A stretch of DNA of 63,083 nt, filler included, from Bipalium vagum (Eukaryota): assembly GCA_037834085.1 (NCBI GenBank). It is 3 parts of 3 records of this genome, joined end to end, with 100 filler letters (N's around TTAATTAATTAA, not from the genome) between each part and the next. Parts side by side here need not be neighbours in the genome. Positions count along the whole stretch, not along the records: positions 47,129 to 63,083 come from JBBMKC010136098.1; 2 more parts are not named here. One strand, 5' to 3'. The position numbers and the translations under genes were made by a program. Of the stretch, positions 7,401 through 63,083 are shown piece by piece. Below the pieces are notes generated by a model, which saw only the letters and a program-made list of their open reading frames with translations, was not told the origin of the DNA and searched no databases. The first letter of the stretch is position 1. Each line of letters starts with the position of its first letter.

Positions 7401-9964
7401 AATTAGAAAAATTGAACGCCAAAGACATTTAATATTGGATGCTCCTCGGGTAACGGTTGTCCAAGACCAGTAACATGAAAATTTACTTGATATGGAAAGA
7501 TAAATAAACGAAGAATATTCCGTAATAATACCGAACTGTAATATTATCCTTCTCTCGAAGAATTTAGTTAATGTTATTTGTTGAGAAAATTATTTCGATA
7601 GCATAATTTAGGTAAAACAAGTGTATTCCGCGTACTGCATATCTCATTTGTCATTAATAATATAAATTTTGTCTATATATAAATTTTTTTTTATTCCTAA
7701 TTTATTTTTTTGTGTTTTGATACAATCGTTATAATAAAAGATTGGCAGTGATTTCTACCATATCTTTGAATGTGAAGAAATTGATTTTCTAATTGTGTAT
7801 TTTAAAAGTAATTATTTTTAAAACTAATTTATATTTTCTTTTTAATATGAAATTTTTTATCATTTATTTTAACGAAAATAATTTAATATTTAAGTACATT
7901 TTTCTGTTAATACATCGCGGTTTCCCTTTGATCTATACAATGCAATTTCTGTACATAATTTAGATAATAAAAATTTGCTATTATGGAGTATATCTCAAAT
8001 TTTATGATACCCCATTATCTGTATCATCTATCATCAAATTGGCACAAATAAAGTTTCACAAATCCTATGATTTATCCCAGTTGTTCTTGTCCAACAAGTC
8101 ATATCCATTAAATTTCCAGTCTCTCTATCAATCTCAATAGAATTCTTCTAATACCATTCATCATTTTCATCATTAATCTTAATTAGTTTGACGTGTTTTG
8201 CTTCCGATAGCCAATGTTGAAAAAAGAAAAATAATAATAGTTATATGATTTATTATGCAAAAAGAAAAAAATTTTGAAAAATATGAAGATTGTACGATTT
8301 TTTATTTTTTTATTTCTTCATATTTTTAATTTTTTTTCTTTTTATAAAAAGATTTTTCAAAAATATTATTTTTCTTAAATAGATAGACATTTTAATAATT
8401 TTACTAATTAAATAAATCATGAACAAACAAATATTGCTAGAAAGCTGAAAATTAATTACTCATTTAAACAAATAAAAGCAATTTTTCTGTAAAATCTACG
8501 TTACATTTTACCACAATATTATCGAAATATTTCTGAGACAAATTGTTGGAAAACTATTTTGAAAATTGTCCTAATATCTCCAGCCTATGTGAAACATGAC
8601 TTTCCATAAATATTTGGTAAGAAAAAATAATGTTCATTTTATTACTGTCGAACAATTTATTATTTCTATATTTTATATTTTATAGATTTAACAAAGTATT
8701 TATGGAAAAACTGTAATTCAAATTAACCATAAAATAATCACAACTTTTGCAAGTATAAAAATAAAGATGAAAAATTTATTAAAAAAATATTGCTTAAAAA
8801 GTTGTTAAAAAAAATAATAGTAATAATAATGATTATAATTATTATTATTAATATTAATATTACTTATTAACTAATACAAAATAAAAACTGGAACAATTAT
8901 TATTAATACTGTTAGATAATAATTTAAAGTATTTGTTTAAATAATTGAGTTGTGATAAATATACAGATTCAAAAAAGTACTTTGGTAATATTTATTTAAT
9001 GATTAATTTAGGGGAAGAGTCAATCCAATCTATCAAATATCATTATTAGTAATATTGTTAAAATTATTATATTGTATCGGTTATTTAATAAATGATAAAA
9101 ACAATAATAATAATATTTATCAATAAGTACTTTATATTTTACTATAACTTAATCTTTGCCTGTCTTAACAGATATATATATATATATATATATCTTATTT
9201 GGTTAAATTCTGTAATAATTGTATCGACAAAACCAAATAATACATAACAATAAAATAAATAATATAAATAAATAAATAATGCTGATGCATTTTATTAAAA
9301 AAAAACTAACTTCTGCAGACCAGCTGATTATTGTCATTAGGAATCTGATAATAGCCAGTGTTACAATAGCACTTTGAAGAGCCAGGAGAACTGTGTGAAT
9401 TCTTCGGACACGGAGCACAGGGTTGAGAACCAGAGAGGGGTTTGAAAAAATTTCGAATACATTCTTTAGTCAAAATAAATGATGAGATTAAATTCAATAT
9501 TTCAAAATAATTCCCATTAAATAACCAAAGGATAATCAATGATCTTACTTAGACATAATGTTTTGTTTCGATTGCCTTCCTTTCCAGGCTCACATTCACA
9601 AAAGTGTTGGAAATTGTTCAGTGTCCATTCTCCATTAGGTTGACAATAATTCCAAATAGGTTTATGGTAATTGGAAATTCGTGTACCTCCGGATACGCAC
9701 TGACCCTCAATTCTTGTCGATTTATTTTCTAAGCCCACCGCTGTTCGATTAAAATGGACAAAGTTGATTACTCTGTCATAACATCGGAGAAAGAAAACAG
9801 TGACCTCTTTTATCATCACACAGGACCCTGTATTTTGGAAGGCAATAATAATGCCTTTTCGATTTACTGATATATTTGAATGGTGAATGTTTAGAATGTT
9901 TTCCGTTCTGTCTTTATTGTCCCACTTTCGATTTGGAGAAATCGTTGCAACGGGAAGGAAATGC
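343..9964 (-). CDS. Eph: Eph receptor tyrosine kinase, partial ectodomain; exons 9549-9964, 9311-9463, 3331-3523, 343-482
   Basis: Manual splicing with GT-AG sites and compatible phases gives: end of ligand-binding domain (KGIIIAFQNTGSCVMIKEVTVFFLRC), Cys-rich region (GQCV...CQPNGEW...CECEPG; CAPCPKNSHS..CYCNTGYY), then FN3 (RPPDKPRNIQL...LSWDAP...YSVVCKKC...VTLLGIIPSREYDFEVSTRNEVS). This is the Eph domain order. The gene continues past the window start; 5' exons were not found. Confidence 0.9.
900..1335 (+). mobile_element. decayed mariner transposase, 3' part, in an Eph intron
   Basis: Degenerate SPDLAPxDF-like segment and C-terminal CIDCGGEYFDKQ; frameshifted. Confidence 0.7.
1440..2153 (+). 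mobile_element. Tc1-family transposase remnant
   Basis: VKHPIQVMIWS...FMHDGAAC...PGNSPDMNPIENVW with internal stops; ends ...actgTA. Confidence 0.88.
2925..3016. repeat. (TAT)n microsatellite
   Basis: Direct trinucleotide repeat. Confidence 0.9.
3730..4060 (-). mobile_element. highly decayed mariner N-terminal fragment
   Basis: WIKDSKAGR resembles the WFKRFKSG helix-turn-helix motif; no intact ORF. Confidence 0.4.
5700..5990 (+). mobile_element. mariner N-terminal HTH fragment
   Basis: VVAQMTAAKWFKRFNNEDLNLKEKPRLSRS. Confidence 0.75.
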
Positions 9965-10851
9965 CTTAATTAATAATAANNNNNNNNNNNNNNNNNNNNN
10001 NNNNNNNNNNNNNNNNNNNNNNNNNNNNNNNNNNNNNNNNNNNNNNNNNNNNNNNNNNNNNNNNNNNNNNNNNNNNNNNNNNNNNNNNNNNNNNNNNNNN
10101 NNNNNNNNAATTAAAGAATATATTTTGTATTTATAATATTTATTTGAGTTTGGAAAGTTATGTTAAATACTTACCTTATTTCACATTCTTTTTTATTTAT
10201 TTTAAATTATTTTATTTTGTTTTTTGGTTAAATAAAAATGGTTATATATTAATCATTAACAAATATACAATTAATGACCGGCCACAGTAATAATAGATAA
10301 CTTCACATTTCAAATTGAGGTTTCCTTACCGAAAATAAATCAAAATTTCAAGTGAATAAAAAACGGGTTTTATATGAAAATATGTACGAGAAAACATTAT
10401 AAAACCCATAATCAAATAATTAGGAAATCCCAGAATAGGGAAAATATTCTTTAAAAAAATCTCTGACGTCCTCTATCACCTTCGGACAGATTTCCTTTTA
10501 TCCAACGCTTTGGTTTTGGATTCTGATGTTGATGGACTGTTGAAAGATTTCTGGAGAGGTCTTTTTTTATTGAACTGAAAATGCCAAAAGTGATAAAACA
10601 AAAAATTTCACTGAGATTTCGATAGAAATATTTTCTTTCTTCAGACATTTTTCATATTTAGATTAGTATTTTTTCACAATTTTTTCAGGAAAGAAATCAT
10701 GCAAAAATTTTTATTTTTCAACAAAAACTGACTGATTTTTCATTTTTATTGTATATTTTTCTTAATTAGGGCGTGAAAAATACTAATAATGATAAGCGTT
10801 TTGTTAAATATTTATTAAAATATATTTTTACCTTATAAAATAAGATCAAAT

Positions 10852-47128: not shown

Positions 47129-47173
<45 letters not shown>

Positions 47174-47186
47174 AATTATTATTACA

Positions 47187-47277
47187 ATGCCATCGACATT
47201 ATATTATGCAATGTTTTCAACCTGGGTCCAAATCTGGATCTGGTTTTGCGTGTTTATTATGTTTAAAATGTCCGAGG
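47187..47277 (+). CDS. signal-peptide exon of the FN3-array gene
   Basis: MPSTLYYAMFSTWVQIWIWFCVFIMFKMSE, then a 23-nt GT-AG intron (47278-47300) in phase 1, matching FN3 unit 1. Confidence 0.7.
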
Positions 47278-50200
47278 GTTGATCTCTGTTCCGATTTCAG
47301 AGAGCGGGCCTGTATCATCAATGACATTTTCCAGTCTTTTTCCCACAACACCTTTATTAATTATATGGCAACCCCCCTTGGAACCGAACGGCGAAGTTGT
47401 TCGGTACTCAATCTCTGTCCACAATGTCTCCGACCACTGGTGCTTATTTAAACTGTTCGTGGACTGCGTCGATTGCTCAAACAACGTGAGACCCTTCCAA
47501 CTATGCTTGGTATTGTCTATACTTAACATACCCCTTCAGATATTGTCTTTGATCCTTCCAAATAATATCACTGCCTCCTGTCGAGAGATATTGAAGAACT
47601 CAAATGTATTCACCAAGACAAACTCGTCGTTTTCCATCGTCATTGATGATCCTTTGATTCGACCCTATGTGGAGTACGAGATCGTGGTTGTACCTCTGAA
47701 TGGGTTTGGATGGGGTAATGAGACCAAATTGATGAACAGGACCTCTCAATATGGTTAGTGCTGTCATTCTCTCATTTCGATTATAGATAAAAATAAATTA
47801 ATCTTTTCTTCTTACTTTTATGATGTCCTTCTTGTTTAAGTAAGTGGACCAGTATCATTTTTANNNNNNNNNNNNNNNNNNNNNNNNNNNNNNNNNNNNN
47901 NNNNNNNNNNNNNNNNNNNNNNNNNNNNNNNNNNNNNNNNNNNNNNNNNNNNNNNNNNNNNNNACTCTGTCCAGCTTTTTTCCGTCAAAGCCTCTTTCAG
48001 TTGAGTGGAAACCCCCTTTGGAACCGAATGGGGAAGTGGTTCGGTACTCGATTTCTGTCCACAATGTCTCCGATCACTCGTGCTTATTGAAAATGTTCGT
48101 AGACTGCACCGATTGCTCAAACAACGTGAGACCCTTCCAGCTATGCTTGGTATTGCCTTTACTTACCATATCTCTTCAGATATCGTCTTTGGTCTTTCCA
48201 AATAATATCAATGCTTCCTGTAGAGAGATGTTAAAGAACTCAAACGTGTTCTCCAAGACGAATTCATCATTTTCCATCGTCATTATTGATACTTTGATTC
48301 GACCCTATGTGGAGTACGAAATCGTGGTTGTACCTATGAACGGGTTTGGGTGGGGTAAGGAGACCGAAGTGACGAAGAGGACCTCTCAATATGGTTAGTG
48401 CTGTCATTCTTTCATTTCGTTTAAAGACAAAACAAATAAATCTTTTTTCTGTTTCATTTTGCTTTTCTTCTTTAATTTCAAAAATGGCAGACCGTTTTGT
48501 TCTGTCAAAGTCTCAATTTTTAATCTGAAATAATTTTATTTATTTATTTATTCCTTTTTATTATTGGACTGACATTAAGGGTAAATGAAAATTGTGTTTC
48601 GAAATAGGTCTGTTCGTTGTGGAGAATGAAATGAATTCGTTGCTGGCTTAAATGGACAATTTATTTTTGTGTCTCGCGGGAAATAGTTTTGATTAAATAA
48701 TCAATTTTTCATTGAATATGCATAAATAAATCAATATCGAAGATATTTATGTTCATTTCCAACAGGTTTGTTTTTTGTACTACTGTAAGAGAGGTGGAAG
48801 CGAGCTGGTGGTGCGGAGAAAACACTTGGTCATGTGTGTGTGTGTGTGTGTGTATTTGTCGGGGAAGGAAGTGGCGCGCTTTCAGATCGTTTGTGCTAGA
48901 ATTGTTGTTCAAAATTCCGCACTGGATATTTTAATGTAAACCTATCGCACTTCTCCCTTCATCATGGCGGTCAAGATTCAAAGTCGGTTAATCATCTGAA
49001 AGCATCGTTGATCAGATCTTCGAGATGAACTCGACTTTGGTAGATCATCAAGATCGAAATTGTTTCCTCTAAAGAGAACGAACCATTCGTGAACTGATCT
49101 TTCTGATACATTATTTTTCAATAGTGCACCGATATTTTGGGCGGTCTCCCAGCATTTGGTCCGTAACGAAATTCATAGAACATCACATTTCTGATGTTGG
49201 TGGAGGAATCACGTGAAGAAAGGGTCTTAAAATCCATCTGTTAGTTGAAATAATATTTCTTAAGATTCTAAAACAAAAACCATGGCAGGATTTATTGATT
49301 AATTTATCAAATTATCAAAAGATTTGTACAGATGGTACAATAATCAAATTGATTTAATATTGAAATAAACCAATGGAGACATTTCCACCAATGCAATGAA
49401 TCGCGGTCCCGGTCTTCGTGAGTCTAAAATAAGGGAACACCCAATGCAATCTGCGATTCACTTCAGAAACATGGAAAACCAGTCTATTTTTGATATAATT
49501 TGCGTTTGATAACAGGATAATACTCAACACATGATGGGGAGCATGGCCACGATCCATGGCAAACAACGTCAAAGCCAGGATTGTTCCAATGAAATTATTG
49601 CTTTCAAATTAGTGGGATTTTAAAGGTGTCCTCTTCTATGATGAGGTGCTTCTAGCATCTGGTACAAGAATTGTTTCTGATCTGTAATGGTTGCCATTAA
49701 CAAAATGGACCTTAGTAATCCAAGATAAACGCCAGAAAATGCAAAATTGCCAACTGGTATATTTTCAGTTCGACAGGGCTAGACTCCATAGCCCTTGTTC
49801 ATCCGGAACGAACTATGGAATCTGTCTGGCATTTATTGCTTCATATCCCTTGATCATCGGACTTGGGTCTTATCGACGCTGCGACAACCTTTCAACGGGA
49901 AATCTTTCAGGGACGGTGAGTCACTGTAAAGTCTCCTCAACTCATTTTTATAAAAGAAACCCTAAGAGTTCTACGAACCATTCTATGATAGTTAGAAGGA
50001 CAAAATGCACAATTAATTCTTGAATTATTAATCTGAATGGACATTCCATAATTCATTAAATTTTTTTGTCAAAAAATGTTTTCCCAGTTTTATCTTTTTA
50101 TTCAAAACCGAACTCACCAACCAAATTTTTAAAATAATTCTGAGTTTATTTTGAAGCTAGTGGACCCGTGTCGACCATAACAGCTTCCAGCTCCTTTCCA

Positions 50201-53200
50201 ACAAAACCTCTTTCACTAGAATGGGCACCGCCCTTGGAACCAAACGGCGAAGTTGTTCGGTACTCAATCTCTGTCCACAATGTCTCCGACCACTCATGCT
50301 TATTGAAACTGTTTGTGGACTGCACCGATTGCTCAAACAACGTGAGACCCTTCAAACAATGCTTGGTATTGCTTTCTTACCATACCACTTCAGATATCAT
50401 CCTTGATCCCTCCACATAATATCACTGCCTCGTGTAAAGAGATATTTAAGAACTCGAACGTATTTTTCAAGACAAACTCGTCGTTTTCAATCGTCATTAA
50501 TGATCCTGTGATCAGAGCCTACATGGAGTACGAAATCGTGGTTGTACCTCTGAACGGTTTTGGATGGGGTACCGAGACCAAACTGACGAAGGGGACTTCT
50601 CAATATAGTTAGTGCTATTATTCTCTCATTCTGATTAAAGATAAAATAAATAAATCTTTTCTCTTTTTCATTTTACTTTTCCTCTCTCAATTTTCTCCAT
50701 CGATTTCTGAATCTTTTTATTCAAAATAAATAAATAAAATTATTTCAGAGTAAAAACAAATAAATTAAAAATTTTCCAATTTCTGTCGACTTCTTCTGTG
50801 ATGTTTTGTTATTTCAAGTTAGTGGACCCGTGTCGTCCTTAACCACATCCAGCTCTTTTCCGTCAAAGCCTCTCTCAGTTGAGTGGACACCACCTTTAAA
50901 ACCAAACGGAGAAGTGGTTCGGTACTCAATCTCTGTCCACAATGTCTCAGACCATACATGCTTATTAAAAATGCTCGTGGACTGTGTGGATTGCTCAAAC
51001 AATGTGAGATACTTTAAACAGTGGTTGGTATTTCTTATACTTACCATAACCCTTCAGATATCGTCATTGGTCCTGCCAGGTAATAACACTGCCTCGTGTC
51101 CAGAAATGTACAAGAACTCCAATGTATTCTCCAAGACGAATTCGTCATTCTCCGTCATTATTAAAGATCCTTCGATTAGACCCTACCTTGAATATGAAAT
51201 TGTGGTTGTACCTCTGAACGGATTTGGATGGGGTAATGATACCACAGTTGTCAGGAGGACGGCTCAGTACAGTGAGTCTTATGATGTTTAAATCGAAAAG
51301 AAGGGATCTCCTGAATAAAATTCATTTCTTTTTAAATATCGTTTATTTATTTTTTGTTAAGTTGGAGATAAAAATATTATTTTAATTTTTCTTAAAATAT
51401 TTTTAAAATTGATTTATTAAAACAAAAAAAAATTGGAAAACATTCAATAACTTTTAAAGCAGCGATCCAAAGGGTTGATGATGAATATTATTAAGTCTGA
51501 AAAGACTTGTCAGCTTCGACAGAGCTCAATTCTACGGGAAAGATTTACTCTTCATAAATCGTTATTTGAAAATTGCCAATCATCTCAAAGTAATAATTAA
51601 GACAAGTGCAAAGGAGATAATTAAATGTCAACCAATATCTGTCAATTGTTAAAGAATCTCACAAGACTGATCTCCCACTCGAAAGGTCGAACTGTGATTG
51701 GATAGAGATCAAAATCGATATATGGGAAACAATTTCCACGCCCACGCAGTCTATTTTTGAGTCTGAAAGTGCTACGACGGAAGAACGAACAATTTTGACA
51801 CAGGCTGAACTTTATGCGTTATTTTGAATTCGACAGTTCTTTTAATCACCATCACAAGTACATGAAAATGTCAACAAGGGTCTCACTGACCGTATGTAAT
51901 CAAAACCAATAAGGTTTCATCATCACCTCGTGGTCTGTGGTGTTTGACTTTGCTCTGTAAATATTTTTCCGGCATCGGCACTGAAGACCTTTGATCCTAT
52001 TGCAAAACTTTTAATGAGCAACAGATTTTGATGATCAAGATTGTCAGTGAAGGGTTTCCTTTTGAATATTATAGCGTCAACAGCGGTTGAACTATACCAA
52101 GTTCTGTCTTGAGATTTTCAAATCGAAAAATCTTCTTCTGACGCTTGTCAACGACATCCGTGCCACCATTGGACGTTGAGAGATTGGTAGACATTTTATG
52201 TGAACAAACATAGCTTAGGCTTTTGGTTAAGGAGTTAGTGTCAGTATAAGGATGGTATGTTGAAGATAAGCAAATCTTTAAAGGTTTGTTAAAGAAAGAA
52301 GACGTTATCAAAGTTCTGAAGTTCAGATAGTAAATTTTCTGTAGAGAAAATGGTTAATTAATTCATTGGTACGCTTTGGTTGAATGCCGAAGACTCGTGG
52401 GATCTTAATTAGTTTGTGTATTGGACGACAAATCTGAGAATAAAAGGATAAAAGGAGGAAGATAAGAAGGGCTGAAAAATCATGAAAAAATACATAGGCT
52501 GTCCATTTGGACGGATCTTACTTAGGGCAATAGAAAGTAAGACTGGAATACCAGAACGACTAGAAGAACAGCAAGCTTTAAGAAATAGTAAGGAAAACCA
52601 ACCATAAAAAATTACCTAAAAATCAGAGGACCATCTAAAAGAAAGAGATATCTTTATCGTTTAAAAGAGAAAGGTTCAGCATGGTGTACACGAAATAAGT
52701 TTAGCAAAGCAAGATTTATATTGAAATATACAAACACCCCAGGATAAGGTCGCCGAGTATGATTTTGACAAAATGATGGAATTCACCTGACCACATGAAA
52801 AGGGAGGAAAGGATTTTCTTTTATTAAAAAAAATTTCTTTGTCATCTTTCTTTTCTTTTAGTAAGTGGACCCGTGTCCTCTTTGACTTCTTCCAGCACAT
52901 TTCCAGCAAAGCCTCTTTCAGTTGTCTGGACACCACCTTTGGAACCAAATGGCGAAGTATTTCAGTATTCAATTTCTGTCCACAATGTCTCCGATCACTC
53001 TTGCTTATTGAAACTGTTCGTGGAATGTACCGATTGTTCAAACAACGTGAGACCCTTCCAAATATCTTTCGTAATACTTATACCGATCATACTCCTTCAG
53101 ATATCGTCTTTGGTCTTTCCAAATTATATCAATGCTTCATGTCGAGAGATATTTAAGAACTCGAAAGTATTCTCCAAGGCCAATTCATCGTTTTCCATCG

Positions 53201-56200
53201 TCATTAATGATCCTTTGATCCGACCCTATGTAGAGTACGAAATCGTGGTTGTACCTCTGAACGGGTTTGGATGGGGCAACGAGACCAAAGTGACAAAGAG
53301 GACCTCTCAATATGGTTAGTGCTGTCGTTGTCTCATTCCGATTAAAGAAAATACAAATCTTTTCTTACTTCTTTTGTGATGTTTTTGTTATTTCAAGTAA
53401 GTGGACCCGTGTCACCCTTAACACTGACCAGCTCTTTTCCGTCAAAGCCTCTCTCAGTCGTATGGACACCGCCTTATGAACCGAACGGGGAAGTGGTCCG
53501 ATACTCTATTTCTGTCCACAATGTATCCGACCACTCGTGCTTATTGAAACTGTTCGTGGATTGCGCTGATTGTGCAAACAACGTGAGACTAATGGTGCTA
53601 TCTGTAACATGCTTTTATCTTGAACATCCTCTCTCAGATATCGTCTTTGGTCTCACCACATAATGAAACTGCCACATGTCTGGAAATAAAAACGAGTTCC
53701 AACTGGTTTTCAAAGACGAACTCGTCTTTCTCGGTTGTCATTAAAGATGCTCCCATCAGACCCTACACTAGCTACACAATCGCTCTCATTCCTTTGAACG
53801 GGTTTGGATGGGGTAACGAAAGCCGTGCAGATCTCAGGACTGACCAATATTGTGAGTTTTATCATTTGTTGCGACCTCACCATTTTCCCCTCCCCGAGGA
53901 CAGCGTGATATCGCTTGGCAATATTTTGTTTTTACCTTTTTATTTTTGCTCAAGGTCAAATGGGAACGAATTCTTCCAAGATTAAGAAAATTGGCAAGAG
54001 GGATTCGCGGTACCCTTTTAATTCTTCATTATCTTTCTTTTCTCTTCCAACAGAATATTCAGGCCAGAATCGTCGATATTGTCACTCGCAATGTTTATAT
54101 GGTGGGAAACCATAGCAACGCCTCTATCAGAAATTTATTATTGTTTTTTCTTCCTTCTTCATAAAAATTCCGTTCACACTGAATACGCCCTTTGCCTTTT
54201 GTCCTTTTTTAACCTCTTTCCTCGCATTGTTTCGATAATTATTTTGGAGAAAAGATATTATTATCATTATTTTATTTATTTATTATATAACGTAATATAA
54301 TCTTTTAAATTTGAAGATTTGTTTAAATTAATTAATTTAATCATTAAAAATATCGATCGAGTCGTTATTCTCAAAAAGTGATTTGACCTTGATGGTGTGG
54401 TGGAATGTATTTTGTGGTCATCCGGAAAATCCTGTCGATTTTGACCGAGAACATCAAAGAAAACGTTCATCAGTCTCTAACGCTTTTATATAACAAAATA
54501 TTCACCATTCTAGTCATTTATCCTTCGTCATGGGATTGGTAGTTGAGAAATCCCTCTCTGTATGAAATCTGAAGGCTTATTGGAGATGACGTCATCAAAG
54601 CTCTTCTTAGTGGGTTCCAATAAATCAAACCTCTATTCTTAATGAATTTTTGAGAAATAAGAAGAAATTGTAATCCGCGTTGCCAAAGTCATTGTAACCT
54701 ACAGTTTCGTATTACTATTATTATTATTATTAATTTGTAAGACAACAATCTTCCGTGTACTCAATTCTGGTCGTTTGTTTCCATATTTACCGTATGGTCT
54801 CCTCGTTGAGAACAATATGTTTCGGAATTGGTTTTCATTTTTGGACATCAACTTATAAACCCACCATACCTAGATCAATGCTTCTCGTCGACAAAGTCCA
54901 GTCTTTGGCATATATAAAGAGGTTTCACCTGCTTTACTCCAAAACATCGTCAAATTGGATCCATTTCTCAACTAACATTATAATCTGGTTTTAATAAGAA
55001 GAAACTTATTTCTTTTCAGTAAAAAAGAACTCGAAAAATTCGTTTCTTTCTGGAAAGTTTTTGTTAGTCTAAATATCGTATTGGCTGACGAATCCTAATT
55101 TCTGTTTATGATCGCGAATGGTGCTCTGGGGCAATTGGTTCTGCAATTCTGAAACATTCAGGATTCTGGTCTAGAATATTTTGGAAGATATCATTACGAT
55201 CATATGAGTGTCAAGGATTAGCAGTACCATCCCGATTGAAATTCTGCCGTTTGGGAAACAAGTAATGACACTTTCTTTATCCATTGGCCAAGGCATCATA
55301 GGTTTTGGTAATTACAGTTTTCTTCCTCAGACTAGGGAGAAAAACAAATTAAGGGTGCTTTAGTCAGATTTTGATGAAGTGGCCTACCAACCTATCCATC
55401 CTACCATCACTCCACCTGACAATCCAATCACCTCAAAGTGGAAAGGAAAGGGAAAGGCTATAGAATTTAAATTGACCGACCACTCCGCGCGTATGACATA
55501 AACTAGAAAACCAATCACAAAATCATGTTCGGTTCTTCTGACCCCACAAAACGTCGTTTTTCACAATATTAAAACAGATTGAAAAATTATTTGGAACTTT
55601 ATCTACATCTTGTTTTGTGAACTCTTACCTTCTTTCAGTTAGTGGACCCGTGTCGTCCTTTACCGCATCCAGTTCTTTTCCGTCAAAGCCTCTCTCAGTT
55701 CAGTGGACACCACCTTTCGAACCAAACGGGGAAGTGGTTCGGTATTCGATTTCTGTCCACAATGTCTCCGACCACTCGTGCTTATTGAAAATGTTCGTGG
55801 ACTGCGTCGATTGCTCAAACAATGTGAGACTCTTTAAACAGTGATTGATATTGCTTATACTTACTATAACCCTTCAGATATCGTCTTTGGTCCGGCAAGG
55901 TAATAGCACTGCCTCATGTCCTGAAATTTACAAGAACTCCAATGGATTCTCCAAGACGAACTCATCATTTTCCATTGTCATTAATGATCCTTTGGTTCGA
56001 CCCTATGAGGAGTACGAAATCGTGGTTGTACCTCTAAACGGATTTGGATGGGGTAATGAGACCAAAGTGACGAAGAGGACCTCTCAATATCGTTAGTGCT
56101 GTCATTTTCTCATTCTCATTAAAGACAAAACAAACAAATATTTTCTTCTTACTTCTTTTATGATGTTCATGTTTTTTAAGAAAGTGGACCAGTATCATCT

Positions 56201-59200
56201 TTAACTCTGTCCAGCTTTTTTCCGTCAAAGCCTCTTTCAGTTGAGTGGACACCCCCTCTGCAACCAAACGGGGAAGTGGTTCGGTACTCGATTTCGGTCC
56301 ACAATGTTTCCGACCATTCGTGCTTATTGAAAATGTTTGTAGACTGCACCGATTGCTCAAACAACGTGAGACCCTTCAACCAATGCTTGATATTGCTTTC
56401 TTACCATACCCTTTCAGATATCGTTTTTGGTCTTTCCAAATAATATCAATGCTTCCTGTCAAGAGATATTTCAGAATTCCACGGCATTCTCCAAGACGAA
56501 CTTATTTTTTTCTATCGTTATTAACGATCCTTTGGTTCGACCCTATGTGGAGTACGAAATCGTGGTTGTACCTCTGAATGGGTTTGGGTGGGGTAACGAG
56601 ACCAAAGTGACAAAGAGGACCTCTCAATATGGTTAGTGCTGTCATTCTCTTATTCCGATTAAAGATAAAACAAATCTCTTCTCTTTTTCCTCTTACTCTT
56701 CTTCTCTTAATCTTCTTCATCGTTTTCAGAGTGTTTTTACTCTGAAATAATTTTATTTATTTTTTTATTTCGAATTAATTTTGGGTCTTTTTTATGAATA
56801 AAAATAAATTAAAATTTTTCTCATTTCTGTCGACTTTTTCATGATGTTTTGTTTTTTTAAGTAAGTGGACCCGTGTCGTCCTTAACCCTTTCCAGCTCTT
56901 TTCCGTCAAAACCTCTCTCAGTTGGATGGACACCCCCCTTGGAACCGAACGGAGAAGTGGTTCGGTACTCAATTTCCGTCTACAATGCCTCCGACCACTC
57001 GTGTTTATTGAAAATTTTCGTGGACTGCACTGATTGTTCAAACAACGTAAGAATCTTCAAACTATGCTTAGTGTAGTTAACACTGACCATACCTCTTTAG
57101 ATATCTTCATTGGCCTCTTCTAATTATAACTCCTCAACATGCCATTCAATAAATAATAGCTCGAACGTATTTTCCAAGAGAAACTCATCGTTTTCCATCG
57201 TCATTAATGATCCTTTGATCCGACCATATGTGGAGTACGAGATCGTGGTTGTACCTCTGAACGGGTTTGGATGGGGTAATGAAACAAAAGTGACGAAGAT
57301 TACCTCTCAATATGGTTAGTGCTGTCATTCTCTCATTTCGATTATAGATAAAAATAAATGAATCTTTTCTTCTTACTTTTATGATGTCCTTCTTGTTTAA
57401 GTAAGTGGACCAGTATCATCTTTAACTCTGTCCAGCTTTTTTCCGTCAAAGCCTCTTTCAGTTGAGTGGAAACCCCCTTTGGAACCGAATGGGGAAGTGG
57501 TACGGTACTCGATTTCTGTCCACAATGTCATCAACCATTCATGCTTATTGAAAATGTTCGTAGACTGCACCGATTGCTCAAACAACGTGAGACCCTTCCA
57601 GTTATGCTTGGTATTGCCTTTACTTATCATACCCCTTCAGATATCGTCTTTGGTCTTTCCAAATAATATCAATGCTTCCTGTCGAGAGATGTTAAAGAAC
57701 TCCAACATGTTCTCCAAGACGAACGCATCGTTTTCCATCGTCATTAATGATCCTGTGATCAGAGCCTACATGGAGTACGAAATCGTGGTTGTACCTCTGA
57801 ACGGATTTGGATGGGGTAATGAGACCAAAGTGACGAAGATTACCTCTCAATATGGTTAGTGGTTTCATTCTCATCAAAATTAAAAATAAATATATCTTTT
57901 CTTCTTACTTTTGTGATTTTTTTATTGTTTAAAGTAAGTGGACCTGTGTCGTACATAACCGCTTCCAGCTCTTTTCCATCAAAGCCTCTGTCAGTTTTAT
58001 GGACACCCACCTTGGAACCAAACGGGGAAGTGGTTCGGTACTCAATTTCTGTCCACAATGTCTCCGATCACTCGTGCTTATTGAACCTGATCGTGGATTG
58101 CTCTGATTGTTCAAACAACGTAAGACTTTTCAAACTATTCTTAGTGTATTTAACACTGACCATACCCCTTTAGATATCCTCATTTGCTCCTAATTATAAT
58201 TCCTCAACATGTCATTCAATGTATAATAGCTCCACCATATTCTCCAAGTCGAATTCATCCTTTTCCATTGTCATTAATGATGCTGCAATCAGACCTTATG
58301 TAAACTACGAAGTCGTTGTTGTACCTTTGAACGGGTTTGGGTGGGGTAATGGAAGCCAGATTGTCTTCAGAACGAATCAGTACAGTAAGTTATCTAATTT
58401 GAACTAAATATAACCTTACTAATATAATGATAATGATAATAATATTTTTCAATTTTATTGTTCTTTATTTCTAAAGGATTGTCATCAGAAAATTACGTCA
58501 TTTCCTTACCGGAATTTAACAAGTGAACAATTTCGATCTGACCTTTGTTTTGTTTAACTGAGAAAATAATAAATCGACGAATACTTGTCTGACGAGATGA
58601 CCTTGTAAAAACTGGATATAAATATTCGATCGATTTAAACAAAAATGGTTATGTAAGAAGTAAAACAAGAATTTGACATGTCAAAGGATTGTTTGACTTT
58701 CAATTTTTCCCATACATTCGAACGAAAATCGAAAATTACTTTACATCGGTCCATTTACCTACTTATACATATATGATATTTAATGACCTTCAAAATGACC
58801 AATAACCCATTTAGTTCAAATGTTTTACCACATAATAAATTACTTTGGAATAGTTAAACAAAAGACCGAATGGCATATGACTCACCCTGATATTACTAAT
58901 TTTCTCTTTTTTAACCTATCCTAATTCTGTCAAAATCGACTTTCAGATGTCTAAGGACTTTCACCTTTCCCTTTTCAAACCCGTCTCCTTGTTTAAAAGC
59001 TTTAAAATATTTCCGACTTTCACTTTGGTCCTAGGGACGTTTAAAAGCAGTCATAAGAATAGGAAGGACTACTTACCCTTTAAGTCTACCAGAAAAATTC
59101 TGATATCTAATTGAAGATTTCTACTTGAACCAACGTAAACAATATGAATACCTAAGAATGGGTTTCTTGAGATAAGACTGAATTTCGTTGAAGTAGGGGG

Positions 59201-60751
59201 CGTCAAGGTTTTCTTGGACAGGTTTATCTGGACGACTTTCGCATATATTAATAGTAAAAAGAAACTATCAATTTTAAAATATCCCGACGTCAGGCTGTCG
59301 TCGGTTGAGTGTATTTTTTCCTAAATGAAGATCCCGGTCGGAAAGGATTACGCTCGTTATTTCTGAAATACTTTTACTACTCACAATTTCTATTAATTCT
59401 GTAATACACCTTTCCTGGCCTCTTCCAACAGAATTCAGATCACACGAGCATCTCACCCTTCACCTGTTCATGTCATCTTTAAAAACGTCATCTCTTTTTA
59501 TCACTCGACTGCAATCTTTCCTTTTTATCTGGAAAGATGGATCTTCAGATTCATAATTATAAGTGATCGTTGTCATTTTAAATCGGTCTTTAGAATTGTT
59601 CTTTACCCTTTCTTTTTATCACAGAATATCTGGATGAATGAGAAAAACCTTTTTAAAGTGGATTTACAATGGTTTGATGTAATTTGTCCATCCTTATAGA
59701 TATTTCTTTCAGTTAGTGGACCCGTGTCGTCCTTAACACTGTCCAGCGCTTTTCCGTCAAAGTCTCTCTCAGTCGTATGGACACCCCCTTTGGAACCGAA
59801 CGGGGAAGTGGTCCGTTACTCAATCTCTGTCCACAATGTCTCCGATCACTCGTGCTTATTGAAACTGTTGGTGGACTGTGTCGATTGCTCAAACAATGTA
59901 GGACTTTTCAATTTGTCTTTCAAATAGCTTATAATGATTAAACCCCTTCAGATATCGTCCTTGATCCTTCCAAATAATGTCAATGCTTCCTGTCAAAAGA
60001 TATTTAAGAATTCCACTGCATTCTCCAAGACGAACTCATCGTTTTCCATCGTCATTAATGATCCTTTGGTTCGACCCTATGTGGAGTACGAAATCGTGGT
60101 TGTACCTCTGAATGGGTTTGGATGGGGTAATGAGACCAAAGTGACGAAGATGACCTCTCAATATGGTTAGTGCTGTCATCCTCTCATTTCGATTAAAGAT
60201 AAAACAAATCTATTCTTCTTACTTCTTTTGTGATGTTTTTTATTTCAAGTAAGTGGGCCCGTGTCGTCCTTAACACTGACCAGCTCATTTCCATCAAAGC
60301 CTCTCTCCGTTGAATGGACACCACCTTTCGAACCAAACGGGGAAGTGGTCCGGTACTCAATCTCTGTCCACAATGTTTCCGATCACTCGTGCTTATCGAA
60401 AATGTTCGTGGACTGCGCCGATTGCTCAAACAATGTAAGAATGCCCAGACTATCCTTAGTGTAGTTAACATTCATCATACCCCTTTAGATATCCTCATTG
60501 GCATCTTCTAATTTTAACTTCTCAACATGTCATTCAATTTATAATACTTCGAACGTATTCTCGAAGTCGAATTCCTCGTTCTCCATCGTCATTAATGATC
60601 CTGCAATCAAACCTTATGGATATTACGAGGTCTTTGTCGTGCCTTTGAATGAGTTTGGGTGGGGTAATGGTAGCCAGGTTGTCTTCAGAACGAATCAGTA
60701 CAGTAAGTTATCTAATTTGTCCAGACACTTGTCTTAATAATATAATGATAA

Positions 60752-60802
<51 letters not shown>

Positions 60803-62888
60803 TAGTTGTAATATTTGTACTTGAATAAAGTTTATCTTTGAAATCTTAAGATATAAATGAGGGTATATTTGTTAAAGATCACCAGGGGAGGACAGTTGAA
60901 GGGGCAACAATGAGCTCTATTGAGACAGTGATCGTCCTGAGTCCTAAGAACCGAGCATCATTCACTCTTAAGTTGATGAAATGACGTCAGGCCCCATTTT
61001 AATTGAGAACGTGCAATGGATATCTCCTTTGATGGTCTTCCTATTTGGGACTTCCTTCTTCGCCACCCTTAAGAAATTCCGAGCCATCAAAAGCAGAATT
61101 GTCATGACATATTAAGACTACCATCATGCTTAGTTTACTCCTTTTCTCCACTAATGGTTGTTGTGGAAGTCACATTTATCTCTTGGATGGTTACTTGACA
61201 AAAACCTCTGCTTTCAAACCAGCTGTCTTGTTATTGAACTGGTCAACCCCTTGCCTGTTTGATCTTCTCCAACGGCTTTTTGACCTTCGAGTAGTAAGTA
61301 TGCTTCTCCTGGACTTCTGCAAACGAGATTTATATAGATTCACCATTATCCCTTGCGATTGAAGCACATCTGGATCCCTCGAAAACGAATATAGATGTTT
61401 CGAACATAGTCTTGCGTATTCAATTACATTTTGGTGGTGCTACCACAATATCATTGACCAAGGATGGAAATAGCTCGTTCTGTCTGTCCTTGGTATCGCT
61501 TTAGACTGATTTCTTTCCTGTTCACTTTTTCGTCCTATCACCATGTCACGTAAGATGCCATGGAGAGGAAGTCACGTTGACCTAACTTCTCCATCACTAT
61601 CAACCACTCTCCGGAACTTGAACACATCCTCGATGAAAGGGGTACTTTTCCTTTCATGTCAAAGACAGATTATTTACATTGGTCACACTTCCGCTGAAAA
61701 TTTAGTGACATATTAAAACAAATTCCTTTTCGAAACCCAATTTTGTACGCCGACCTTTCACTGAGAGTATCCCTCATCAAGTGTGTGATCTTCTCAGAAT
61801 AAAAGTTAAACATTTTTCAAGGCAGAATTTCAACTGAACGGTTTTATCAGGGAATAAGGTTTTCTGTTTTCTCTTTGTCAAATGTTTTTTCTTGCAGTCA
61901 GTGGACCAGTGTCGTTCTCAACTGCATTCAGCTCATTTCCATCAAAACCTCTGTCAGTTGAATGGAAACCGCCTATGGATCCAAACGGGGAAGTGGTTCG
62001 GTACTCGATTTCTGTCCACAATGTCTCCGACCATTCATGCTTATTGAAACTGTTCGTGGACTGCACCGATTGCTCAAACAACGTGAGACCCTTACAGCAA
62101 TGCTTGGTATTGCCTTGACTTACCATATCTCTTCAGATATCGTCTTTGGTCTTTCCAAATAATATCAATGCTTCCTGTCGACAGATGTTAAAGAACTCCA
62201 ACGTGTTTTCCAAGCACAATTCATCGTTTTCCATTGTCATTAATGATCCTTTGGTTCGACCCTATGTGGAGTACGAAATCTTATTTGTACCTCTGAACGG
62301 GTTTGGATGGGGCAATGAGATTAAAGTCACGAAGATGACCTCTCAATATGGTTAGTGCTGTCATCCTCTTATTTCGATTAAAGATAAAACAAATATGTTC
62401 TTCTTACTTCTTTTGTGATGTTTTTTTATTTCAAGTAAGTGGGCCCGTGTCGTCCTTAACACTGACCAGCTCATTTCCATCAAACCCTCTCTCAGTCGTA
62501 TGGACACCCCCTTTCGAACCGAACGGAGAGGTGGTTCGATACTCAATCTCTGTCCACAATGTCTCCGACCACTCGTGCTTATTGAAACTGTTCGTGGACT
62601 GCACTGATTGTGCAAATAACGTGAGAACTTTCATCTTTTCCTTGACATTTAGTACCTTCAACATTCTTTTAAAGATATCTTCACTGGTCGTGCCAAATAA
62701 TAACAACGTTTTCTGTCGGGAGATATATAATAACTCAAACGTATTCTCCAGAGCGAACTTGTCATTTTATATTGTCCTTAGTGATTCATTAATCAAACCG
62801 TTTTCCAATTATGAAGTCATTGTTTTTCCTATCAACGGTTTTGGATGGGGTAATGAAACCAAGAACACCTCGAAGACCGCTCAATATG
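47187..62888 (+). CDS. giant secreted or cell-surface protein: signal peptide plus at least 15 tandem Cys-insert FN3 domains (3' incomplete; possibly a receptor-PTP-like ectodomain)
   Basis: 31 exons with GT-AG boundaries and consistent phases, about 2025 aa if all are joined. Each unit: SGPV..LSVEWTPPLEPNGEVVRYSISV..CLLKLFVDCxDCSNN|ISSL..C..IRPYVEYEIVVVPLNGFGWGNE..RTSQY, carrying the FN3 W, Y, LxPxxxY and NxxGxG signatures. Confidence 0.85.
47301..47753 (+). CDS. FN3 unit 1 (exons 47301-47485, 47540-47753)
   Basis: 185-nt and 214-nt exons, 54-nt intron. Confidence 0.9.
47841..48393 (+). CDS. FN3 unit 2 (exons 47841-48125 interrupted by an N gap, 48180-48393)
   Basis: Same unit; 100-N gap inside the first exon. 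Confidence 0.85.
48833..48853. repeat. (TG)n microsatellite
   Basis: Direct repeat. Confidence 0.85.
48980..49245 (-). mobile_element. mariner N-terminal fragment in an FN3 intron
   Basis: IRNVMFYEFRYG...VSERSVHEWFVLFRGNNFDLDDLPKS. Confidence 0.8.
49480..50030 (+). mobile_element. mariner catalytic-domain fragment in an FN3 intron
   Basis: KLLLSN*WDFKGVLFY; VYFQFDRARLH; YP*SSDL. Confidence 0.75.
50157..50607 (+). CDS. FN3 unit 3 (exons 50157-50341, 50394-50607)
   Basis: 52-nt internal intron. Confidence 0.9.
50819..51271 (+). CDS. FN3 unit 4 (exons 50819-51003, 51058-51271)
   Basis: 54-nt internal intron. Confidence 0.9.
52862..53314 (+). CDS. FN3 unit 5 (exons 52862-53046, 53101-53314)
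   Basis: 54-nt internal intron. Confidence 0.9.
53398..53851 (+). CDS. FN3 unit 6 (exons 53398-53582, 53638-53851)
   Basis: 55-nt internal intron; divergent second exon. Confidence 0.9.
53940..54960. mobile_element. decayed mariner-like fragments in an FN3 intron
   Basis: KLARGIRGTL, IVDIVTRN and MVWWN resemble KLDKWVPHEL, LDRIVTCD and VWW motifs. Confidence 0.45.
55639..56091 (+). CDS. FN3 unit 7 (exons 55639-55823, 55878-56091)
   Basis: 54-nt intron containing an in-frame TGA. Confidence 0.9.
56181..56631 (+). CDS. FN3 unit 8 (exons 56181-56365, 56418-56631)
   Basis: 52-nt internal intron. Confidence 0.9.
56862..57314 (+). CDS. FN3 unit 9 (exons 56862-57046, 57101-57314)
   Basis: 54-nt intron with an in-frame TAG; chimeric second exon. 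Confidence 0.9.
57402..57854 (+). CDS. FN3 unit 10 (exons 57402-57586, 57641-57854)
   Basis: 54-nt internal intron. Confidence 0.9.
57935..58384 (+). CDS. FN3 unit 11 (exons 57935-58119, 58174-58384)
   Basis: Second exon is 211 nt (one-codon in-frame deletion). Confidence 0.9.
59713..60165 (+). CDS. FN3 unit 12 (exons 59713-59897, 59952-60165)
   Basis: 54-nt intron with a stop codon. Confidence 0.9.
60250..60702 (+). CDS. FN3 unit 13 (exons 60250-60434, 60489-60702)
   Basis: 54-nt intron with a stop codon. Confidence 0.9.
60860..61700 (-). mobile_element. possible decayed non-LTR reverse-transcriptase fragment in an FN3 intron
   Basis: Higher GC; weak matches to D..SAFD and VL.P..F motifs. 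Confidence 0.35.
61898..62350 (+). CDS. FN3 unit 14 (exons 61898-62082, 62137-62350)
   Basis: 54-nt intron with TGA. Confidence 0.9.
62436..62888 (+). CDS. FN3 unit 15 (exons 62436-62620, 62675-62888)
   Basis: 54-nt intron; divergent second exon; ends at a GTTAGT donor. Confidence 0.9.
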
Positions 62889-63011
62889 GTTAGTCTTTTA
62901 AAATGTTATTAAATGGCGACATTGGACCACTTTTTTATAAATAATTAAACAAAAACAAGTTTCTAATTTGTTTTTTTCAATAATATTTGATAATTAATAA
63001 TAATGATGCAA

Positions 63012-63083
<72 letters not shown>
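63012..63083. repeat. (TAT)n microsatellite
   Basis: Direct repeat to the window end. Confidence 0.9.

Follow-up and report, generated by a model that had tools for sequence, protein, structure and literature searches.

The ectodomains of vertebrate PTPRQ and of the other R3 receptor protein tyrosine phosphatases (PTPRB, PTPRJ/DEP-1, PTPRO and PTPRH) consist of fibronectin type III (FN3) domains only and are heavily N-glycosylated, and some of these domains carry W-x7-G-x4-Y (W7G4Y) loops and are encoded by 1:0:1 exons (PMC5336234). The W7G4Y motif in the B-C loop is a signature of the FN3 domains of the PTPRQ group, and the 1:0:1 two-exon class has been described in R3 phosphatases (Chicote et al. 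2017, PMC5336234). A tandem array of two-exon FN3 cassettes was studied here in a stretch of genomic DNA from Bipalium vagum (NCBI GenBank assembly GCA_037834085.1). The whole stretch, referred to as the window, has a length of 63,083 nt including filler and is joined from three records; the region analyzed was positions 47129-63083, which come from contig JBBMKC010136098.1, and all coordinates are those of the window. With moderate confidence, the array is interpreted as an inner part of a single large animal gene, in which a module related to the R3 phosphatases would have been amplified into a serial, glycosylated and extracellular rod of FN3 domains.

Cassettes were located with two conserved peptide motifs as anchors, and the exon borders were then read off. 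Fifteen cassettes were found (Table 1). Each is composed of an exon a of 185 nt, running from phase 1 to phase 0 in all units, and an exon b of 214 nt (211 nt in unit 11), running from phase 0 to phase 1, and the two exons together encode 133 residues. AG before and GT after the exon was observed for 30 of 30 exons. The coding frame was free of stops over about 1,980 codons, compared to 77 and 102 stops when these exons are read in the two other frames; the long introns contain 0.057 stops per codon. The introns between exon a and exon b (a-b introns) are 52-55 nt long, with 54 nt in twelve units. Stops are present in the a-b introns of units 7, 9, 11, 12, 13 and 14, and in units 3, 6 and 8 the a-b intron puts the sequence out of frame; the a-b introns are therefore real introns. 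The introns between cassettes (b-a introns) are 80-230 nt long, but reach 1.2-1.8 kb after units 2, 4, 6, 11 and 13. Whole cassettes are phase-symmetric (1 to 1), so that any subset of them stays in frame. The sole exception is the joining of exon 6b to exon 8a, which arises if unit 7 is skipped and creates a TAA from the last base of 6b (T) and the first bases of 8a (AA). A sequence-only reading of the window had described at least 15 intact cassettes of this kind, introns with stops and indels and the 6b-8a stop codon. All of these were recovered at the same places and with the same lengths, phases and borders, and the described cassette anatomy is real and far beyond what is expected by chance.

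An assembly gap within a near-identical tract, together with the microsatellites in which the contig ends, could raise the suspicion of a decaying pseudogene, a satellite-like repeat or an assembly artefact with an inflated copy number. Such an origin is extremely improbable and close to refuted. No stop or frameshift was found in the 30 exons, where about 110 stops would be expected by chance, a strong excess of differences at third codon positions was observed, and the units are 7-31% apart in DNA, so they are distinct copies. Furthermore, independent short contigs of one DNA run (55600-61500) cover units 7-13 without rearrangement and with an even unique depth of about 22-27.

The gap is located inside exon 2a. 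Comparison by blastn with unit 10, the reference unit for the cassette alignments, showed that 47841-47863 corresponds to nt 1-23 of exon a and that the sequence from 47964 onward corresponds to nt 24 onward. A TAAG-type acceptor is present before 47841, 87 nt past exon 1b. Since the two flanks occupy consecutive register positions, in-frame continuity is compatible with the data, though unproven, and the register fits either an empty gap or a whole number of cassettes. A tract of about 600 nt (47661-48263) was found to be 93-100% identical to 57222-57724, compared to 75-85% in the rest of the units concerned. It spans the 3' half of exons 1b/9b, the short intron, exons 2a/10a and the 5' half of exons 2b/10b. 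The tract, within which the gap lies, looks like the product of a recent gene conversion and is a likely cause of the assembly break.

The G+C content of the analyzed region is 35-42%. The contig has (TAT)n repeats at its start and (ATT)n repeats at its end, which lies 195 nt past exon 15b. AT-rich trinucleotide microsatellites of the types (TAT)n, (TAA)n and (ATT)n were located at 47129-47184, 60735-60789 and 63012-63083, corresponding to the two contig ends and the intron after unit 13, and these are the source of the only long inverted repeats in the region. Long stop-free open reading frames (ORFs) were seen on the minus strand opposite the exons, for example at 52676-53041, 56034-56360 and 60193-60471. 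They repeat with the cassette, are without a family match and most likely reflect nothing more than the conserved coding sequence opposite them.

Database and fold searches were performed with single exons or with read-through translations of units 1, 4, 5, 10 and 15, whose 54-nt intron preserves the frame and has no stop. The read-through queries, and the fold model, therefore include 18 intron-coded residues. The Pfam profile fn3 (PF00041, gathering cut-off 25 bits) was matched by read-through unit 1 with 25.4 bits and by read-through unit 15 with 27.7 bits (E 3e-6; profile positions 2-79 of 84), and no domain type other than FN3 was detected by Pfam in the analyzed region. An AlphaFold model of read-through unit 10 was an all-strand beta sandwich with a pLDDT of 63 and a pTM of 0.62, including the 18 intron-coded residues; its low-confidence stretch is exactly the intron-coded part and the cysteine-containing insert described below. 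In structure comparisons the model came closest to the FN3 domains of fibronectin and integrin beta4, with a Z of 8.5 and an rmsd of 2.9 over about 93 residues, and Foldseek E-values were only about 0.01. A sequence search of the PDB gave generic matches to the B-C loop only (insulin receptor, ROS1 and LAR-type FN3).

The cassette is an FN3 domain of the PTPRQ type, enlarged to its full size by an insert after strand C. The W-x7-G-x4-Y B-C loop was found in 15 of 15 units. The insert, likewise present in all 15 units, is about 40 residues long and has four conserved cysteines in the pattern C-x9-C-x2-C...C, three of which are encoded by exon a and one by exon b. The four cysteines probably form two disulfides. 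Each unit also has 3-6 N-x-S/T sequons for N-glycosylation at recurring places.

In units 1, 2, 4, 5, 10 and 15 the 54-nt a-b intron (e.g. 57587-57640) keeps the frame and contains no stop. Its retention would place 18 mostly hydrophobic residues in the insert. In one relative, P0022, a prokaryote-style gene call runs through the equivalent a-b intron.

A protein profile was built from five units and searched against 1.84 billion representative proteins. The only strong match was an unnamed fragment of 513 residues (P0001; UniParc UPI0005FF8A4E) with an E-value of 5e-96 and 42% identity. Beyond P0001, the true relatives in this search were limited to three short ORFs, found in an ENA assembly and a Logan assembly. 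A cassette on a Logan contig was composed of an exon a of 185 nt, an intron of 60 nt and an exon b of 208 nt. When P0001 was used as query, the database search returned P0001 itself only, and metagenome scans for a related locus with more context gave no relative. P0001 resembles the array in that its four a+b units follow one another in series and share the array's cysteine pattern and a|b junction. It differs in that it belongs to another species, is truncated at both ends and is organized as an alternating two-unit super-repeat: units 1 and 3 are 94% identical and units 2 and 4 are 96% identical, compared to 85-87% for the cross pairs. Two irregular a|b junctions, one with six extra residues and one with 14 missing, suggest that P0001 is a computed gene model and hence does not count as transcript evidence. 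The two-unit super-repeat of P0001 echoes the alternation of short and long introns in the array.

Second-tier matches that cross the cysteine motif were found in a PTPRQ-like protein of Saccostrea and in PTPRQ-like and phosphatase eta-like proteins of Haliotis. The remaining matches, to PTPRQ, usherin-like and sidekick-like proteins and giant proteins of sponge and amphioxus, cover the generic B-C-loop region only. The named mollusc R3-type phosphatases each contain exactly one FN3 domain with the same cysteine pattern, and an HCxAGxGR phosphatase motif is present near the C-terminus of several mollusc proteins with the Cys-insert. The Cys-insert FN3 of Saccostrea aligns over the whole unit, including the insert, with 24% identity. 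Genomic DNA of Saccostrea and Haliotis showed that this domain is encoded by two exons in the 1:0:1 pattern, with the phase-0 intron placed between Cys3 and Cys4. In Saccostrea this intron lies 13 residues upstream of Cys4, as it does in the array. Both the derived four-Cys FN3 subtype and the intron position are shared with the mollusc R3 phosphatases, and domain and intron position are homologous. A language-model look-up of P0001 gave PTPRJ fragments as the nearest cluster, which is regarded as a lead only. Judged by these comparisons, the array appears to be a lineage-specific amplification of a module that is single in mollusc R3 receptor phosphatases. The sequence-only reading had recognized no described gene with such an architecture. 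In agreement with this, no one-to-one orthologue with the array was found among the 1.84 billion representative proteins; the building block is less new, as the 1:0:1 FN3 class is known (PMC5336234) and the Cys-insert FN3 occurs singly in mollusc PTPRQ-like genes.

Some further observations were made in the mollusc genes. In Saccostrea cucullata (JAVVLV010020888.1, about 9950-9970; P0111/P0112), isoform X3 is without five residues (VTSLK). The loss is exactly at the phase-0 intron of the Cys-insert FN3 and points to an alternative donor, in an intron homologous to the a-b intron. Most FN3 domains of the Saccostrea gene are encoded by single exons. In Haliotis cracherodii (JAJLRC010000003.1, residues 900-1400), most FN3 domains, beyond the Cys-insert one, are encoded by two exons.

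In the explanation favored here, the Cys-insert FN3 module of R3 phosphatases, single in molluscs, would have been multiplied by repeated tandem duplication, partly in blocks of two units. The cassettes would still be exchanged by gene conversion, and purifying selection maintains each of them. Joined in series they would form a rod of at least 15 domains and over 2,000 residues, with a length of tens of nanometres, and this rod would be heavily glycosylated and extracellular. A signal peptide, a membrane anchor and possibly a cytoplasmic phosphatase domain would be located off the contig. A serial FN3 array could also belong to a secreted matrix or coat glycoprotein of a cuticle, shell matrix or mucus layer, lacking both membrane anchor and phosphatase domain. 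Neither an anchor nor a catalytic domain is seen on the contig, P0001, the sole related gene model, likewise consists purely of repeats, and very long FN3-only proteins of the usherin-like and tenascin-like types were high in the profile search. All named carriers of the Cys-insert FN3 that were found are nevertheless R3-type receptor phosphatases, and these are also split at the insert, and a secreted glycoprotein is regarded as rather unlikely.

Several points weigh against the favored explanation of a rod derived from an R3 phosphatase module. Expression and serial inclusion of the cassettes are putative, and the link to the R3 phosphatases consists of one domain type at 24% identity and an intron position. 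B-C loops of the PNG type are also found in FN3 domains of usherin, the insulin receptor and ROS1. The contig (47129-63083) shows no convincing signal peptide and no exon for a transmembrane segment or a phosphatase domain. Finally, the weak splice sites of the b-a introns and their conserved start, described below, could be signs of regulated splicing.

A signal-peptide exon had been proposed at 47187-47277 in the sequence-only reading, and this proposal is doubtful and was not accepted. The intron between this ORF and exon 1a would be 23 nt long (47278-47300), compared to 52 nt for the shortest intron elsewhere. The ORF also overlaps the stretch where the branch point and the pyrimidine tract of exon 1a's strong acceptor are expected, and it had no Pfam match. 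The coding strand is T-rich, and short hydrophobic ORFs are cheap in such a sequence. The sequence 5' of exon 1a does not look like a standard short b-a intron and resembles that of units located after long introns, and the exon that precedes 1a most likely lies beyond the contig. Without the proposed signal-peptide exon, the gene is left open at either end of the contig.

Selection on the cassettes was estimated from pairwise comparisons of the units. Divergence at codon positions 1/2/3 was 0.11/0.07/0.32 for exon a and 0.19/0.17/0.36 for exon b. The dN/dS ratio (omega), calculated by the method of Nei-Gojobori, was 0.15 for exon a (dS 0.64) and 0.23 for exon b (dS 0.86). Within exon b, omega was 0.20 for the core and 0.29 for the insert part, and the highest pairwise value was 0.61. 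Protein identity between units had a mean of 83% for exon a (74-93%) and a mean of 68% for exon b. No sign of diversifying selection between units was observed in the dN/dS of exon a, of the core of exon b or of its insert part. The intact features and an omega far below 1 show that the copies are old and distinct and that each is maintained by purifying selection.

The long introns were searched for remains of further units, and no decayed cassettes were found in them by tblastn or blastn. They had no match to a Pfam domain or an Rfam family and no shared repeats, except for the first 60 nt or so of the introns after units 11 and 13. The divergent units are those before long introns (4, 6, 11, 13 and perhaps 15), and judged from this order the array seems to have grown partly by two-unit blocks.

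In the short b-a introns the donor is an unusual GTTAGT, and the acceptors of the a exons are AAG in 10 of the 15 units. The first 48 nt or so of these introns had an identity of 0.79 between units, compared to 0.73 at third codon positions. The conserved b-a intron element is GTTAGTGCTGTCATTC, and examples of the intron starts are 47754-47800, 56632-56680, 60166-60212 and 62351-62398. Either a role in splicing control or simply gene conversion could account for the conserved start.

The sequence-only reading had left the choice between one long repetitive surface protein and a library of alternatively spliced cassettes. In the latter, regulated skipping or selection of cassettes, possibly with joining of non-adjacent a and b exons, would give many ectodomain isoforms, in the manner of Dscam or the clustered protocadherins or, in a milder form, of tenascin-C. 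The phase symmetry, which keeps any subset except 6b-8a in frame, fits such a library, as does the fact that every cassette is individually intact at a dS of 0.6-0.9. The weak donors and acceptors of the b-a introns and their conserved 5' element point in the same direction, and the NCBI length isoforms of Haliotis PTPRQ-like differ by about 260 residues. A library is nonetheless unlikely on the whole. FN3 exons as a rule show phase 1:1 symmetry (PMC5336234), and nothing in the array enforces exclusivity, as the symmetry lets any number of units in and the b-a introns, with at least 80 nt, have sufficient length for splicing. Inverted-repeat and minus-strand searches gave no conserved docking/selector complementarity to any site in the analyzed region, but only microsatellite arms and chance matches of up to 14 nt. 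With omega at 0.15-0.29, no pair above 0.61 and exon a 74-93% identical, there is little diversity to display, and the array is homogenized by gene conversion. Mixing of a and b exons is also spoken against by the tight a-b intron of 52-55 nt, whose strong and conserved signals should tie each exon a to its own exon b. Of the two options, the repetitive protein fits better, considering the purifying omega values and the mean identity of 83% in exon a, and no docking/selector pairing was found in support of the library. Weak GTTAGT/AAG sites and the conserved intron element around each a+b pair could still allow cells to use varying subsets of the units and so to set the length of a receptor-phosphatase ectodomain or its composition, as a recognition or spacing code made of FN3 instead of Ig domains, but this proposal is more doubtful still.

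Table 1. Positions of the FN3 cassettes and other features on the contig part of the window.
Feature	Position	Strand	Exon a	Exon b	Remarks
Proposed signal-peptide exon (doubtful)	47187-47277	+			30-codon hydrophobic ORF ending G|GT at 47277/47278
Cassette 1	47301-47753	+	47301-47485	47540-47753	
Cassette 2	47841-48393	+	47841-47863, gap, 47964-48125	48180-48393	1b-2a intron 87 nt
Assembly gap inside exon 2a	47864-47963	.			100 N; sole N run in the region
Cassette 3	50157-50607	+	50157-50341	50394-50607	a-b intron 52 nt; 1763-nt intron upstream
Cassette 4	50819-51271	+	50819-51003	51058-51271	54-nt a-b intron in frame, stop-free; GTGAGT donor, then 1590-nt intron
Cassette 5	52862-53314	+	52862-53046	53101-53314	
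Cassette 6	53398-53851	+	53398-53582	53638-53851	Divergent; last base T; a-b intron 55 nt; then 1787-nt intron
Cassette 7	55639-56091	+	55639-55823	55878-56091	First of five closely spaced units
Cassette 8	56181-56631	+	56181-56365	56418-56631	Exon a starts AA
Cassette 9	56862-57314	+	56862-57046	57101-57314	Exon b like b of units 11 and 13
Cassette 10	57402-57854	+	57402-57586	57641-57854	93% identical to unit 2
Cassette 11	57935-58384	+	57935-58119	58174-58384	Exon b 211 nt, shorter by a one-codon deletion within the insert; 1328-nt intron downstream
Cassette 12	59713-60165	+	59713-59897	59952-60165	
Cassette 13	60250-60702	+	60250-60434	60489-60702	85% identical to unit 11; 1195-nt intron downstream
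Cassette 14	61898-62350	+	61898-62082	62137-62350	
Cassette 15	62436-62888	+	62436-62620	62675-62888	GT donor after exon b, then contig end in (ATT)n

If the favored explanation of an amplified R3-phosphatase module is right, the locus would be a clear case of one specialized FN3 module amplified into a long array, with the amplified state present in this lineage and in a few poorly sampled relatives. It would bear on the evolution of ectodomain length in receptor phosphatases and in similar glycocalyx proteins, and it would represent a gene family almost absent from protein databases. The array does not by itself establish a new principle, as FN3 arrays, phase-1 cassettes and 1:0:1 FN3 exons are known, and it would become important only if the choice of cassettes were regulated.

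Compared to known systems, the array shares with Dscam1 and the clustered protocadherins the tandem arrangement of paralogous exons of equal length and phase. The Dscam variants are single exons, one of which is chosen by docking/selector RNA pairing, whereas many units of the array fit together in frame, pairing elements were not found and diversity is low; the clustered protocadherins make use of alternative promoters. In tenascin-C and fibronectin, tandem FN3 domains are flanked by phase-1 introns and can be skipped in frame, as is the case for the array cassettes, but each FN3 is usually encoded by one exon and variable use has been documented by cDNA, whereas the array is known from genomic DNA. 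The FN3 domains of vertebrate PTPRQ are without the four-Cys insert and their repeats are old and mutually divergent, in contrast to the young and homogenized array. The closest likeness is seen in the proteins of Saccostrea cucullata (XP_062589564-6) and Haliotis (XP_048240492/4 and XP_071114657), which have the same W-x7-G-x4-Y loop, a C-x8/9-C-x2-C...C insert and the 1:0:1 split. In these mollusc R3 phosphatases the Cys-insert module occurs once among ordinary FN3 domains, whereas the array has at least 15 tandem copies of it, with an identity to the mollusc domain of only about 24%.

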